Source: Cycas panzhihuaensis (Eukaryota; Plantae; Cycadophyta). From it: a DNA stretch of 64,000 nt. This document shows, one piece after another, positions 53,690-64,000 of this stretch. The notes beneath the pieces are model-generated. The model had not been told where the DNA came from, did no database searches, and was given only the letters and a program-made list of their open reading frames with translations. Within the stretch, counting starts at the first letter, position 1, and each line of letters opens with the position of its first letter. The translations under genes were made by a program, and so were the position numbers. The stretch is from positions 91,023,741-91,087,740 of the forward strand of contig CM041465.1 in assembly GCA_023213395.1 (NCBI GenBank). Reading direction: 5' to 3'.

Positions 53690-56600
53690 GGTAACTAAAT
53701 CTCAGTTAAGTACAGTGTTGGAGTCGATATAATTCTCCCTATTTGAGATGGGGTAACTTCCAAATACTACTACCCAAAAGGCTAAAGTACTATTGCCTTA
53801 ATGGCTAAAAACATCTTACCAAATTAGTGTCAGGATGCCTAGGAATGAATCCCCTGGGTCCTTTATATAGTTGGATTTTACCTCCATATAGAATTTGACC
53901 AAGACATGGTGAAATACTAGCGTGAATATCACCTATAAGTAAGTTAGAACAATGCTTTTAAGTCAACCAAGATTGAGTAATTGTTGGGGTTAATGTTCAT
54001 CACCCCACTCCTACCTTTCACACATGTGAGTACACATATGTTAAGGTAAGTCAGGTAAGGTTAAGTTGATTTGAGTTAAGTTATCAAGTTATGTAATATT
54101 TTATTGTTATTTGAGGGGTGTTCTTAGTGTCTTTAGACACTGCCTATATTGGAAATTTGCTATGTACTCACTCAAAGATAGATTGAATACAAAAAGCTTA
54201 TGTGTTTATGTAACAATGTTTTGACTATTTGATTATGCTCTACTGTGTCTCCATCATTGTATGATCCTTCATTTGGTATCAAAGCTTGTTTAGCTCCTTC
54301 ATTTGGTATTAGACCATAGATCCTACGTACATTAGCTCAGATTTTGGCCTGTTAAAGTTTTTTTTTTGAGAAGAAAGAAGATCCATTAGCATCTGAAGTA
54401 GATCTACTCATGACAAGCTAAATATTGGTTATATTCATTTTCTGTAAATCTTATTAGTAGTTTCTTATATTATTTTTCATTAAAGATCTGATTATTTCTG
54501 ATTTATATTTGTAAAATAACCCATGTTTTCATAGATCTATGTAGGATCACAGCTACAATTAGTAAATATTCAAGATTTCATTACTCTATAAAGTTTTTAT
54601 TAATAAGTTTTATATATTTTATCAAATACTTGGCCATTTTTGGTGATTTTATCTATTTATTTAATATTTTTTCTAGATCTATGTAATAGTTGTTGTATAT
54701 TCAGCCTAACAACTTTCTTGGAGAAGTTATACTATAAGTTTTATTGTATACTCACTATTTTTTTCAGGTTTTGGTAAGCATAGGTTGATATTCATTTTAC
54801 TGATCTATCTCTTCATCTGCTTGATGAAAGTGCAGTATATAACTGCTTATTGGATTCCTAACAAGCTCATCTGTCTACTGGAGAAATCGGCTCAAAATTT
54901 TGCCTTGTGTAGAAAAAGATCTCATCCTCGAAAGGTAACTCTCTGCAAATTGGACACTGTCACTTTACTTGTTTTTTATTTTTTAATTTATATGTAAATG
55001 TTTTTTGCTTAAATATTCCTCCATTGATATTATGAGTGAGAAGATTGTATTGCATTGTATTGAGCTTCTATATTTTAGCCCTCACCCTCTGATCTAAGTA
55101 TTACGACTTAAAATTTCATCCTCTCTAGAAGGAGATCTAAGTCTTTTATGTTTTATATAAATATATATATATATATTTTGTTGGGGTTAATACTCATCAC
55201 CCCACTCCCACCTTCCAACCAGGAGTGCACACCTCACACTCATCAATTTACACATGTGGTTGCTCACATGTATAGGTAAGTATAAAGTAAGTTTAATTTG
55301 ATTTAAGTTAATTTGAGTTAAGTTATTATTTTATTGTTGTTTGATTTTTAGGGGTTGAGGAGTTTCCTTCCTCCCACAAACTATATGTTTTGAGGGGTGT
55401 GCAACCTTGGTGTCTTTAGACACCGCATTCATTTTGGACATTTGTAATACTCTCTTCACAACAATGGATTGAATATACAAGTTTTATGTGTTTATACTAC
55501 TATACAACAATGATGTATTGATTTATGATTATCTTTTTTATGTTCTACCCTGTTCTCTATCATATATGTTTCCTACATTTAGTATCAAGGCAAGAATATC
55601 TATTAGCATTTTGATGGCCTATTGAAGTTTTTTGAGAAGCAAGAAGATTTATTGATATCTATAGTAGATCTACTCACAATCTAGCAAATATTGGTCATAT
55701 TCATTTTCTACAAAGTTTATTAGCAAGTTTCTTGTATTTTTTATTAGATCTGCTTATTCTTAAAGATATACTTGTGATACAATAAATATATTTTAGATTT
55801 TCTTCAGATTTGTACATGTGCATAGTTGCAAACAACAAATATCAAGATGTTATCACTCTACCTAAGGTTTTATCAACGAGTTTTATATATTTTTATCAAA
55901 TATTTGATATTTTTCAAGTATATTTTATCTATTTATCCAATACTCTTTTCAGATCTATGTAGGAGCATGGCTACAAGCAGTATTTATTCAAAGTTTTCTT
56001 CAGATTTGGTATATATCCTTTAGATCTGCTCATTTTATCAATTATTTAACAGTTTTTTGATTTATTTTGTTTAGATCTACAATATCTACTCAAGATCTGT
56101 AATATTTGCTTCAAATCTGTAATATTGGCTATAGATCTGCAATACTTACTTCATATCTATAATATTTATTAAAATTTTCTTTCAGATTTGTATATTTTAT
56201 TATATATTTGACTATTTTTTCAAGTTCTTTTTTTAAATCTATAAGTTTTGGTGCATATTCAGCCCAACAAGCCATATATCATAGAAGATCTACATTATGA
56301 AGAAATCTGTTTGAAGTTTTGATTTGTGTCGAAGAAGATCTCATCTTTGGAAGTCAACCTACTACAAATTTTCTATAGCTGCATACCATGTTCTTCATAT
56401 TTATTTTCAGATTTAAACACATATATATTTCTTAGTTTTGTAATACATTTTCTCCAATATATTTAAAAATTTTCTTGGTTACGCCACTATATTTGTTACT
56501 TGGATAGTTTATGCACATCCTGCAACTCTTGGGTTTCTACTTCAGATTGTAATTTAAAGACAGATTTGAAGATTTAAGACGAATGTTTTTCTTTTTTCTT

Positions 56601-56847
56601 GTAAAGGATATGAACTCATATTCCTTTTGAGATTCACGATATATTTTTTGGAGTGGCTCCCTTCTTAGACGAATTTATCCTTGCTTATAAGAGATTATTT
56701 TCTACAAAATTTAGAACCAATGCATAATAGTTCCAGCAAGAGATGTGCATATAGTTCATTACCTTCACCTTATTTTTTTCTATCCAACATCTCCATCATT
56801 ATTTTCCATCATTTATTATCACCTCCATCATTTTATTTTTATTATTT

Positions 56848-56934
56848 AGCAAATTGGTTGCTATGACTAGGCTGCAATCCAGGGTCATATGTTTGGGAAG
56901 CTAGATAGGTGAGGGCAGTCACAACATCACCAAT
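56848..56934 (-). pseudogene. Captured fragment of a PBS1/PBL27-type (RLCK-VII) kinase C terminus
   Basis: Reverse strand translates IGDVVTALTYLASQTYDPGLQPSHSNQFA, matching the RPLIGDVVTALTYLASQ.YDP signature. Confidence 0.8.
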
Positions 56935-57450
56935 CTGCTAACACAAACACCATTGCATTCCACTAATAATCGAGCCCGCAAATAGCCTGCACTTATATAC
57001 AATAGAAAAGAAAAATCACCTCAAAGTTCGATGAATGTAATCAACACCCTGAACCCATAACCTCTTTTAGGGTTTTATAATATCCATTGGAAAAATGGTT
57101 TTGAAATACATAGGTGGTGCTATATAAATAATAAAAAAAAAGAAAAAGAAAAAGAAAAAACACCATAATAGAACTAAATAGAATCAATTGCCTTAACCCA
57201 ATATTGTCCTATAGCCTCCTGTGTTCCCATCATTCTTAAATGTTGTCCTAAAGTATGTTCACCTGGTTGACTATATAATGAAGAGAATTGAAGCAAACAC
57301 ACAGCTTGGGCGTTAATAAAACATTAATTTGGCTAGAACGCTTGTCATCTGGTAATCTTGGATCATCCACTTTTTTCGAAGGCTCCCATCTCTCTTACTG
57401 AAGAATTCATTTAATCCATTCTGAGATTCTGGCAAGCTGCATATTTATCC

Positions 57451-61627: not shown

Positions 61628-62092
61628 ATTTCTGAGATTTGCTGAGGACTTGTGATCACTTAAAATTTTGACCCCAAATTTGTTCAGCTTTGAGAGAGGA
61701 TAGCATTGCAATTTCTGCTAATATTGCTGAAGAATCCAGAATAATGCAAGACAATTCAAAATCTGAAACAATAACATATTGACAATTGGAAGAATTGCAC
61801 GACTTCAAGAGAGGAACCTGGATCTTTTGAGAGTAAGGTTAACCCAAAAAATTTAAGTTCTAGTTTTAAGGCATGATAATACAACCTCCCTAAAACTTCA
61901 AGTTCCTCCCTAGTCAATGAAATAGTTAGTTTGTTAAGCAACTCCTTTGTCTACAATGCTAATGCCTCATAGTTTGTAGAAGAGTAGGTTTTGATCCATT
62001 GCTTATATGGATGATTACTACACTCAGTCCCCAGAACTTTGGAGGTTTCTTGCCCCATGCCTCCACTAAGGAATTGTGCAATTTGAGCTCTC
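61620..62092 (-). pseudogene. Captured bifunctional TH2-like (TenA + HAD thiamine monophosphate phosphatase) fragment, frameshifted
   Basis: Collinear motifs ELKLHNSLVEAWG / GQETSKVLGTECSNHPYKQWIKTYSSTNYEALAL*TKELLNKLTISLTREELEVLGRLYYHALKLELKFF / [23 protein letters not shown] / [10 protein letters not shown]. Confidence 0.85.
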
Positions 62093-63931
62093 TATCTCTA
62101 TCTCCACTACCCTTTCGAAACAATAATTTTTCTAGTTTGATCCTTGCTTGAATGCTCGTTATTCTCTTCTTAGTAATGCTCCATTTTAAGAGACAAAGTT
62201 TAGCTGCGACTCTTGCTAGGGCTTCGACTTCTGGGGCTTCAACTATGTGATAATGAGCGACTACGACTATGGCTATTGAATAATTAAAGCCCAAAAAATA
62301 AAAGATTCATGGAAATATGAGCAACATGACTTGCATTCTATAGACGGCGATAGTAGCGGCATATTATCCTTTGTTTATTTTTTATTTTTTATAAAGTTTG
62401 AATTAATAAAATTAAATTGAATATTATTTAAATTCTAGATTTAAAAGGCTTAAGCCCCCTTTGGTCTTGGCCCTTGGTTGTATGTTCCCTCCATGTGACC
62501 TTTAGCTTGTTGCTAAAAGGGCTTTTCAACTTTATAAATTTTTTTCCTTTTATTTATTTATTTTTAAATTTTCTTTAAAACATAGGGTACCTGTTTAATT
62601 TCTTCAATATCTCCTCACTAGGGTATTGATTTCTGACAAAACCTATCCCATTGAGTTTGAAATTTTCTGAGGTATGATTTAGACTAGTTATTTTCCATAT
62701 TTAGAGCTGATTTGACTTATTTCTAATTAGTTTAAGTCAATCCTTTTTAAAAAAGGCCTAATTTTAGATTATTACTATAAAAAGTACTTGCTGCTATTTT
62801 CATTATAACGTTTCTGTTACACTTCAGAATTTAGTTTCGTCAGTTTCATTGGGAACCTGACTCGTTCCTCTTTGAACCGACACTATTATTTATAAGTTTT
62901 AAAGTGTTCTTGTAGAATTTCAAAGCCATCAACGTTGAGGTATATAATATCCTTTAACTTATCATTATTACATATTTTTATATATTATTTCTCAAGTTTT
63001 TCAACTAAAAAGTATATTAAGTAGCTCTCTAAACTATATTTGATCATTTTACAGTGTTCTATAAGATTTTTACTAGCATTTCATAATATTTTGAGCCCCA
63101 TGCTTTTGTTAAGCCTAAAAAAAGGGACTCTATCTTTTGTACATTAAAATCATGACTTGTAGGAACTCATTCTCAAAACAGACAGTTTCGTTGACTAAAT
63201 ATTTTATTGATAGTTAAATTGGTGTAATTTCACCTTATTTTGACATTATTTAGTATAACTTTGAAGCTGCTTAACTTAAGCATTCAAGATATCCTAATAG
63301 GCTTGTTTTCCAAAACTTTTTTTTCAATGAGTTCTTTATTTGATTTCTTATTGATCACTTATAATACATGTTAGATGCTTTCATTTGAATTTCATATAAC
63401 TTCTTTTAAGCTAATTTATAGTATAAATTAATCATATATATCTCAAGCAAGTGATAAGCCAAGTGGTCCTGCAACTCAAAATAAGTACATTTCATTTTTT
63501 TGTTGGAAGTTTCTTCTTCATCTTTTATCTTTCTAAAGTGAAAATATACATATATATTTCAGATTTTTAGCATTATATATATCTTCATCAAGACAAAAAA
63601 AGATTTATTACATTAAAAAAGAAAGTCATTCTTTGCTCAAGTTAAGTGCTTATTTGTTTAAAAAATAAAAAATCTTAGAATTTTTTTCTATTATTTTTTT
63701 TATTAAAAATTTTATTTCAGATCTGCATAGTTTAAAAGATCTTAGTTATTTTTTAAATTTGCTCATATCATTATTATATTTCAAAGAGTCTATTTAAAAT
63801 TATATATGATAAGTTTATTAATTTATTAAGTTCTTTAATTCCTTCTAAAGGCACATAGTTTATTGATAAGTACAAAAAGTTCACTTATAAAGCATATATA
63901 TTTTTTATTATGTACTAAAGTTTTTATACAA

Positions 63932-64000
63932 ATGGCAATCAATCTAAATAAAATATAATTCCCTATATTTGATGGCCATGATTTTTCACAATGGCATAAA
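63932..64000 (+). pseudogene. Start of element G gag (cut off by the window end)
   Basis: MAINLNKI*FPIFDGHDFSQWHK, paralogous to the 59538 ORF, with a probable CAA>TAA stop. Confidence 0.85.

Follow-up and report, generated by a model that had tools for sequence, protein, structure and literature searches.

Retrotransposons bounded by long terminal repeats (LTRs) are known to capture pieces of host genes. The Bs1 element of maize, which lacks pol, combines a gag region with fragments of three host genes (PMC13317346, PMC5131818), and both the capture of partial mRNAs and the formation of multi-gene chimeras in LTR elements, via template switching within virus-like particles, are established (PMC5131818; Bs1 reviewed in PMC13317346). 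Gene-fragment capture by LTR retrotransposons has also been documented in surveys of rice and maize and as retroduplication in pepper; it is found mostly in non-autonomous LTR elements (PMC5664825, PMC2774510), and the carriers of LTR retroposition and retroduplication, likewise mostly non-autonomous, can transpose again (PMC5131818, PMC5664825). In the maize survey, no LTR element was found to combine pieces of two or more genes (PMC2774510), the paper describing the TR-GAG elements makes no mention of host-gene capture (PMC4350172), and neither the orientation nor the position of captured sequence is addressed in a 2026 review, in the maize and rice/sorghum surveys, in the pepper study or in the TR-GAG paper. 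Here we analyse a 64,000-bp stretch of the genome of the cycad Cycas panzhihuaensis (assembly GCA_023213395.1, contig CM041465.1, positions 91,023,741 to 91,087,740 of the forward strand), which we refer to in full as the window, and in particular two LTR elements in its last 10 kb that we call H and F+G. Our reading, to which we assign a probability of roughly 0.6, is that H and F+G are two old non-autonomous elements derived from copia, that one is nested within the other, and that each carries an antisense mosaic of host-gene fragments captured via host mRNAs. Gene capture by LTR elements is known; the backwards orientation of the fragments and their common position are unusual.

Self-comparison of the region from 53 to 64 kb revealed direct repeats between 55179–55580 and 60263–60669 (89% identity), between 58062–59606 and 62364–64000 (several blocks, 73–81% identity) and, more weakly, between 54017–54951 and 55247–56370 (72–76% identity). 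The first of these contains a pair of candidate LTRs, at 55179–55577 and 60263–60666, that are 90.5% identical (Kimura two-parameter distance 0.103). Both start with TGTT and end with ACA, and so have TG...CA termini (60263–60666 begins TGTTGGG and closes ...TTACA). The first copy is followed by TT and then, at 55580–55591, by the sequence TAGTATCAAGGC, which on direct reading is a degenerate primer-binding site. The second copy is directly preceded by a polypurine tract, AAGGGGAAGAA, at 60252–60262 (again by direct reading), and downstream of 60666 reading of the sequence and alignment found neither a primer-binding site for tRNA-Met nor anything that resembles a leader. Because the polypurine tract stands before it and neither primer-binding site nor leader comes after it, we identify 60263–60666 as the 3′ LTR of H. 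Likewise, the 90.5% identity of the two copies, together with a polypurine tract before the second and a primer-binding site after the first only, indicates that they are the two LTRs of one element. H, which spans 55179–60666 on the plus strand, is thus a complete element of 5488 bp. At a rate of 1.3e-8 substitutions per site per year (PMC5664825) its LTR pair would be about 4 million years old, a figure that is to be read as an order of magnitude only.

The sequences on either side of H belong together. When the upstream segment F (53982–55178) and the downstream segment G (from 60667 to 64000, where the window ends) are joined and aligned with H, the order of parts is collinear: LTR, leader, one unmatched block, module and start of gag. 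F ends exactly where H starts and G starts exactly where H ends, F comprises only 5′ parts and G only 3′ parts, and the homologue of the H leader lies upstream of H, at 54345–54951. H is therefore inserted in the variable region of an older relative, and F and G are the two halves of this one outer element, the matching 3′ end of which lies beyond the window. The first-pass annotation had set G and H side by side, having taken the 3′ LTR of H for the 5′ LTR of G. The start of the LTR, the leader, the module and the truncated gag that it described as shared are indeed present in both elements, with the correction that G itself has neither the LTR nor the leader attributed to it. A single LTR (60263–60666) between two internal regions of like layout might also be expected if G and H formed a tandem array that arose by unequal recombination and shared that LTR, rather than a nested pair. 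We rejected such an array, to which we give next to no credence, on the grounds that no primer-binding site or leader follows the LTR that would be shared, that the internal regions are far more diverged (73–81% identity) than the LTR pair (90.5%), and that the LTR, primer-binding site and leader missing from G are found exactly upstream of H, as F.

The two nested elements have a common chassis, which consists of LTRs of 290–400 bp, a leader of 0.7–0.8 kb, a conserved module (AT-rich, non-coding, about 1.5 kb long) and a gag stub. The 5′ LTR of F+G (53982–54271, plus strand, as are all parts of both chassis) starts with TGTTGGGG and ends with TTCA; it is 70–76% identical to the LTRs of H, with which it has a 25-nt start motif in common, and TT separates it from the primer-binding site TGGTATCAAAGC at 54274–54285. 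Read directly against the initiator-tRNA-Met consensus usual in copia elements, TGGTATCAAAGC matches at 11 of 12 bases and TAGTATCAAGGC at 9 of 12. The leader of F+G occupies 54286–54951, and its portion from 54345 to 54951 is collinear with 55615–56370 of H at 72–74% identity; the leader of H (55592–56370) contains short tandem repeats at 56073–56167. The module of H (58062–59537) has a long oligo(T) tract and a box rich in GC at its start and contains no open reading frame (ORF) of at least 60 aa. It is 73–81% identical to the module of F+G (62364–63931) and includes the best-conserved non-coding block of the two elements (78% identity over 531 bp). Because F+G and H are only 72–81% identical to each other, they are best regarded as related families rather than as the single family first proposed.

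The claim that both elements carry a truncated copia gag held up. The gag stub of H (59538–59855) encodes 105 aa followed by a stop codon and matches PF14223 (E 8.8e-9) at profile positions 1–77 of 172, that is, over the N-terminal half only, and has no zinc knuckle. The start of a second stub, belonging to F+G, is present at 63932–64000 and reaches the end of the window; a tblastn search with the protein P0001 (see below) aligned here at 65% identity over 23 aa, and the DNA is 81% identical to 59503–59606 of H. ORF analysis together with Pfam and protein comparison found no reverse transcriptase, RNase H or integrase match in 55179–60666. H and F+G are better called copia derivatives that lack pol and retain a remnant of gag. 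A HMMER search of 1.84 billion representative proteins yielded only two close relatives of the gag stub, P0001 and P0002, each from a single short Logan contig. P0001 is 58% identical to the H sequence over 202 aa, collinear from the start of gag almost to the polypurine tract, and its match to PF14223 is truncated as in H. Because P0001 carries a like truncation, we regard the stub as a trait of the family and not a local accident. A word-based protein search with the gag stub gave no match, metagenome contigs gave 0 matches to the LTR-start pattern and no confirmed match to the gag profile, and Rfam gave no match over 53900–64000. The module and the stub may have been kept together as a cis signal, probably for packaging.

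Between leader and module the two elements part company. The variable block, or slot, of H measures 1691 bp (56371–58061), and that of F+G measures 1924 bp, made up of 227 bp upstream of H (54952–55178) and 1697 bp downstream of it (60667–62363). Similarity to H ceases at 54951 (56370 in H), and the upstream part of the F+G block closes, at its boundary with H, in an AT-rich, microsatellite-like tract. There is no detectable similarity between 56371–58061 and 60667–62363, in agreement with the first-pass annotation, according to which the slots differ completely. We also asked whether the two slots might be homologous in their left parts, and rejected this (local alignment score 29; shuffled sequences 22.8 ± 2.7, maximum 34). 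The variable blocks are richer in GC than the chassis (31–48% and 20–33%, respectively, in 100-bp bins), with values of 31–48% in the H slot and of up to 44% in the larger part of the F+G block.

The block of F+G contains, on the minus strand at 61418–61639, a 74-aa fragment of a WDR5 beta-propeller that matches PF25175 (E 3.2e-29) at profile positions 74–147 of 296, and its identity is beyond doubt. Next to it, at 61659–62091 (minus), lies a stretch that resembles TH2, in which the end of a TenA domain is followed by the start of a HAD domain in three reading frames. Specifically, 61659–61950 is collinear, across one frameshift, with the public 78-aa ORFs P0071 and P0072 (E 3e-6, 78–81% identity), in which a TenA-like end passes into the HAD-like start IVSDFELSC and which are contiguous across the TenA–HAD stretch; 61954–62091 was recognised by eye. 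The TenA identity of this stretch has an Atlas score of 0.84 to PF03070 behind it, which is a weak lead, and the family name was otherwise given by eye. No match was found in the PDB for either TenA piece or for 61954–62091, in Pfam for P0071, or in a word-based protein search with the ORF that spans the junction between the TH2-like and WDR5 fragments. We note that P0071 and P0072 are slightly different ORFs on ENA contigs of about 750 bp, that they share with the TH2-like fragment the unusual HAD-start motif DFELSC, and that they could represent the donor gene or further transposon-borne copies.

The fragments in H have weaker matches, and all lie on the minus strand. A 36-aa piece at 57451–57558 has as its top PDB match an RRP12-like protein (residues 932–967, E 0.034), and a TPR piece at 57251–57394 that resembles PATROL1, absent from the first-pass annotation, matches PF25761 weakly at profile positions 143–175 (E 0.0034) and gave no match in the PDB. 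A further piece at 56845–56937, GDVVTALTYLASQTYDP, was picked out by eye as the C-terminal end of a PBS1/PBL kinase. The kinase label comes from a PBS1-type C-terminal motif (DVVTAL.YLA.Q.YDP), and is supported by no tool. Thus, of the four host genes named at first, WDR5 is confirmed, TH2 is borne out in the form of a TH2-like stretch, RRP12 is retained on a weak match and the PBL kinase is not substantiated. All of these cargo pieces were searched one by one, as separate ORF pieces.

The recognised fragments, RRP12-like and PATROL1-like in H and WDR5 and TH2-like in F+G, lie inside the LTR elements, between the two LTRs in H and in the internal region of F+G; the elements run on the plus strand and every one of these fragments reads on the minus strand. 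A Pfam scan that treated the strands of both blocks symmetrically, covering every stop-to-stop ORF of at least 25 aa (49 on the plus strand and 41 on the minus strand), recovered WDR5 and PATROL1 (E 0.0034) on the minus strand and one chance-level match on the plus strand, so the statement that every recognised piece is antisense holds when both strands are searched alike. We regard it as established that H is nested, that the chassis is as described and that the WDR5 fragment is antisense, and the antisense TH2-like and RRP12-like fragments as supported to a lesser degree. Within the otherwise antisense cargo of H, an A-rich run follows AATAAA-like words at 57125–57160 on the plus strand. It might represent a small sense piece that bears a poly(A) tail, in which case the mosaic would not be purely one-stranded. 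At the left edge of the F+G cargo, 60792–60847 is 84% identical over 56 AT-rich bp to 35850–35904, in the module region of an element described next, on the same element strand; this similarity may be a low-complexity coincidence.

A third, more distant LTR relative with a gag stub, which we call E, lies on the minus strand at 33471–43701. Its LTRs (43701–43418 and 33762–33471) are about 82–85% identical, and it has a primer-binding site (TAGTATCAGAGC), a polypurine tract (GGGGAAGAA) in which the core of the H tract recurs, and a gag stub at 34563–34189. E has in common with H and F+G the GC-rich box that stands at the head of the module. In the region of E equivalent to the slot the ORFs have no Pfam match and no host fragment was recognised, a test of low power, and this is weak evidence that E is a member of the group without cargo. 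Directly before the GC-rich box of the module stands a word that resembles a telomere repeat, CTAGGGTTTA in H (58132–58160) and TTTAGGGTTT in E (36203–36180, minus), which is mutated in G (62435–62460). On the opposite strand this word reads as a telo-box (AAACCCTA) that faces the cargo and could mark an antisense promoter.

Since all pieces within a mosaic probably go back to a single origin, only two capture events are represented in the window. This number matters for the most far-reaching interpretation of the locus, which was that of the first-pass annotation: a dedicated system of "Pack-LTR" type, in which one family with a built-in slot repeatedly takes up host transcripts in one orientation and could produce LTR-driven antisense RNA or small interfering RNA (siRNA) against the donor genes. 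Both elements do carry an insert at a like place and in a like orientation, and the reviews and surveys that we searched on gene capture by LTR elements, being silent on orientation, also count in its favour. Repeated acquisition in one orientation, however, rests on two events, the layout of the elements from which the system was deduced was wrong, and the relative E has no recognisable cargo. Because the LTRs of H are about 10% diverged, these copies are unlikely to match donor genes perfectly over long stretches, and few perfect donor matches of 21–24 nt are to be expected. A stem-loop that had been proposed at the slot boundary was also rejected, as its z-scores (H, −1.7; G, −1.6; E, +0.4) fall short of significance. 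We consider a dedicated system rather doubtful, and a role of antisense RNA or siRNA against the donor genes would be purely conjectural.

Mosaics of fragments from several genes are in plants usually carried by Helitrons and Pack-MULEs (PMC2774510, PMC13317346), and the fragments could in principle sit inside independent insertions of this kind within the LTR elements. A CTAG that adjoins the GC-rich box at the head of the module could be counted in favour of this; yet CTAG and box form part of the conserved module, which lies outside the variable block, and they face away from the cargo. Moreover, no inverted repeats beyond low-complexity runs flank the slots, and sites with a hairpin plus CTRR are rarer than in shuffled sequence (2 observed and 6.6 expected in the H slot). 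With neither terminal inverted repeats (TIRs) nor hairpin-CTRR ends in the slots, we rejected an origin from Helitrons or MULEs, which strikes us as very improbable; on this point the first-pass annotation, which had treated the cargo as part of the LTR elements themselves, is upheld.

We return to the reading in which the mosaics were captured via host mRNAs by the LTR elements. How the capture came about, that the elements mobilised their cargo, and any influence on the donors are inferred. In an ancestor of each lineage, host mRNAs would have been reverse-transcribed with several template switches, giving rise to the mosaic, which would then have been carried along as passive cargo. The priming step may have involved a DNA 3′ end terminating in T residues that annealed to a poly(A) tail and copied the mRNA, so that the copy would come to lie antisense relative to the T-rich strand. 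A candidate for such an end is the growing plus strand in the particle; another is a nicked chromosomal strand, as in target-primed reverse transcription of the type used by long interspersed nuclear elements (LINEs). T-primed copying would explain both the position and the orientation of the cargo, because by either route the mRNA is written antisense to the T-rich strand. The plus strand of the H chassis (LTR, leader, module and the region from gag to the polypurine tract) has 21 runs of at least six T and 1 run of at least six A, and each cargo starts, on the plus strand, after a T-run (56586–56601 in H, 60798–60805 in F+G). A simpler addition, which does not exclude the priming proposal, is survivorship: inserts in sense orientation would bring polyadenylation and splice signals that truncate the element RNA, and mainly antisense inserts might therefore persist as the element goes on transposing. 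In its widest form, which we raise tentatively and would not expect to hold as it stands, the proposal is that pol-less LTR elements of this genome may take up polyadenylated mRNAs by oligo(T) priming at a T-rich leader tract, yielding mosaics of fixed position and obligatorily antisense orientation, the LTR-driven RNA of which would be an antisense or double-strand trigger against many host genes.

The T-runs at the left edge of each cargo are also compatible with a history in which the cargo was never carried by the elements, and in which a LINE reverse transcriptase wrote chimeric processed pseudogenes, by target priming, into an oligo(T) tract of copies that were already resident. The orientation would then have been fixed by the strand carrying the T-run; the edges of the H cargo bear similar T-rich 15-mers (TTTTTCTTTTTTCTT and TTTTTATTTTTTATA, 12 of 15 positions alike), and LINE remnants lie nearby at 50.5–53.5 kb. 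Against this stands that, if the tract is not a strong hot spot, two independent insertions at a like relative position in the nested pair must have coincided, that the candidate duplications are of low complexity and not significant, and that the kinase piece adjoining the T-run has no support from Pfam or the PDB as a true mRNA 3′ end. We hold this history to be distinctly unlikely. The LINE remnant itself occupies 50500–53540 on the minus strand, just upstream of F, with a zf-RVT domain at 50577–51242 (E 1.3e-21); an ORF at 53280–53534 looks by eye like a remnant of the LINE endonuclease and is without Pfam support.

Several points limit the case for capture of antisense mosaics by the LTR elements. 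The candidate 5-bp target-site duplication of H reads TATTT before the element and ATTTT after it, within an AT-rich tract. WDR5 is the only robust hit of the symmetric scan, and the PBL-kinase piece, recognised by eye only, matched nothing in Pfam or the PDB. With two capture events, the shared position and the shared orientation have no statistical support; random orientation would still give two antisense mosaics one time in four. The chassis contains a T-run about every 150–200 bp, and this frequency makes a T-run at a cargo edge weak evidence. Finally, the published template-switch model yields retrocopies in sense orientation (PMC5131818), and antisense cargo for this reason needs an extra assumption.

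Elsewhere in the window, E is split by an autonomous copia element at 36966–43111 (plus strand). Its LTRs (36966–37316 and 42764–43111) are 85% identical, and the 5-bp target-site duplication that flanks it, AAAAA, is clean. The element has a primer-binding site (TGGTATCAGACC) and a separate leader some 1.5 kb long, and it matches gag and pol between 38.9 and 42.6 kb; DNA comparison found no similarity between this element and H or F+G, so that nothing marks it out as their partner. In addition, a 594-bp unit is tandemly duplicated at 2668–3853 with 97% identity.

The window by itself provides two old, decayed examples and a corrected annotation of the elements. Should a fixed position after the leader and an antisense bias prove true across independent captures in the genome, this would point to a step of capture unlike the accepted minus-strand template switch. 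LTR-driven transcripts would then routinely carry antisense copies of host genes, which would bear on the epigenetic cross-talk between transposable elements and genes.

Among described systems, Bs1 resembles H and F+G in being a non-autonomous LTR element whose internal region holds pieces of exons from several host genes that are unrelated to one another. In Bs1, however, the fragments are in sense orientation and form a hybrid ORF, whereas the recognised ones in H and F+G are antisense and not fused to gag; here, moreover, two related lineages carry different mosaics at one position. The cases of LTR retroposition described by Tan et al. (2016, PMC5131818) and of pepper retroduplication described by Kim et al. 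(2017, PMC5664825) are alike in that partial host mRNAs, among them chimeras of several parents, reside inside LTR elements. In the former cases the captured copies stand in place of internal coding sequence, and the LTR drives their transcription in sense (PMC5131818), whereas our cargo lies in the untranslated interval between leader and module; and where LTR-mediated retroposition leads one to expect sense orientation, the recognised fragments are all antisense in both H and F+G.

With the TR-GAG elements (Chaparro et al. 2015, PMC4350172) the chassis has in common LTRs, a primer-binding site, a polypurine tract and a gag-related ORF as the sole coding remnant. Those elements are shorter than 4 kb and their GAG is complete (in TR-GAG1 it has 433 aa and includes a zinc knuckle; PMC4350172), whereas H is 5488 bp long and has a 105-aa stub without a zinc knuckle. 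H thus agrees with them in its lack of pol and departs from them in two defining features, the complete GAG and the length below 4 kb. Pack-MULEs, Pack-CACTA elements and gene-carrying Helitrons, like H and F+G, combine a constant chassis with a variable load of host fragments, with possible siRNA cross-talk with the donors (bioRxiv 10.1101/777037). As DNA transposons, they acquire host sequence in the form of DNA and end in TIRs or a hairpin-CTRR, whereas H and F+G have LTRs and primer-binding sites, with a polypurine tract in H. The antisense cargo at a shared position is thus probably a new form of LTR-mediated gene capture.

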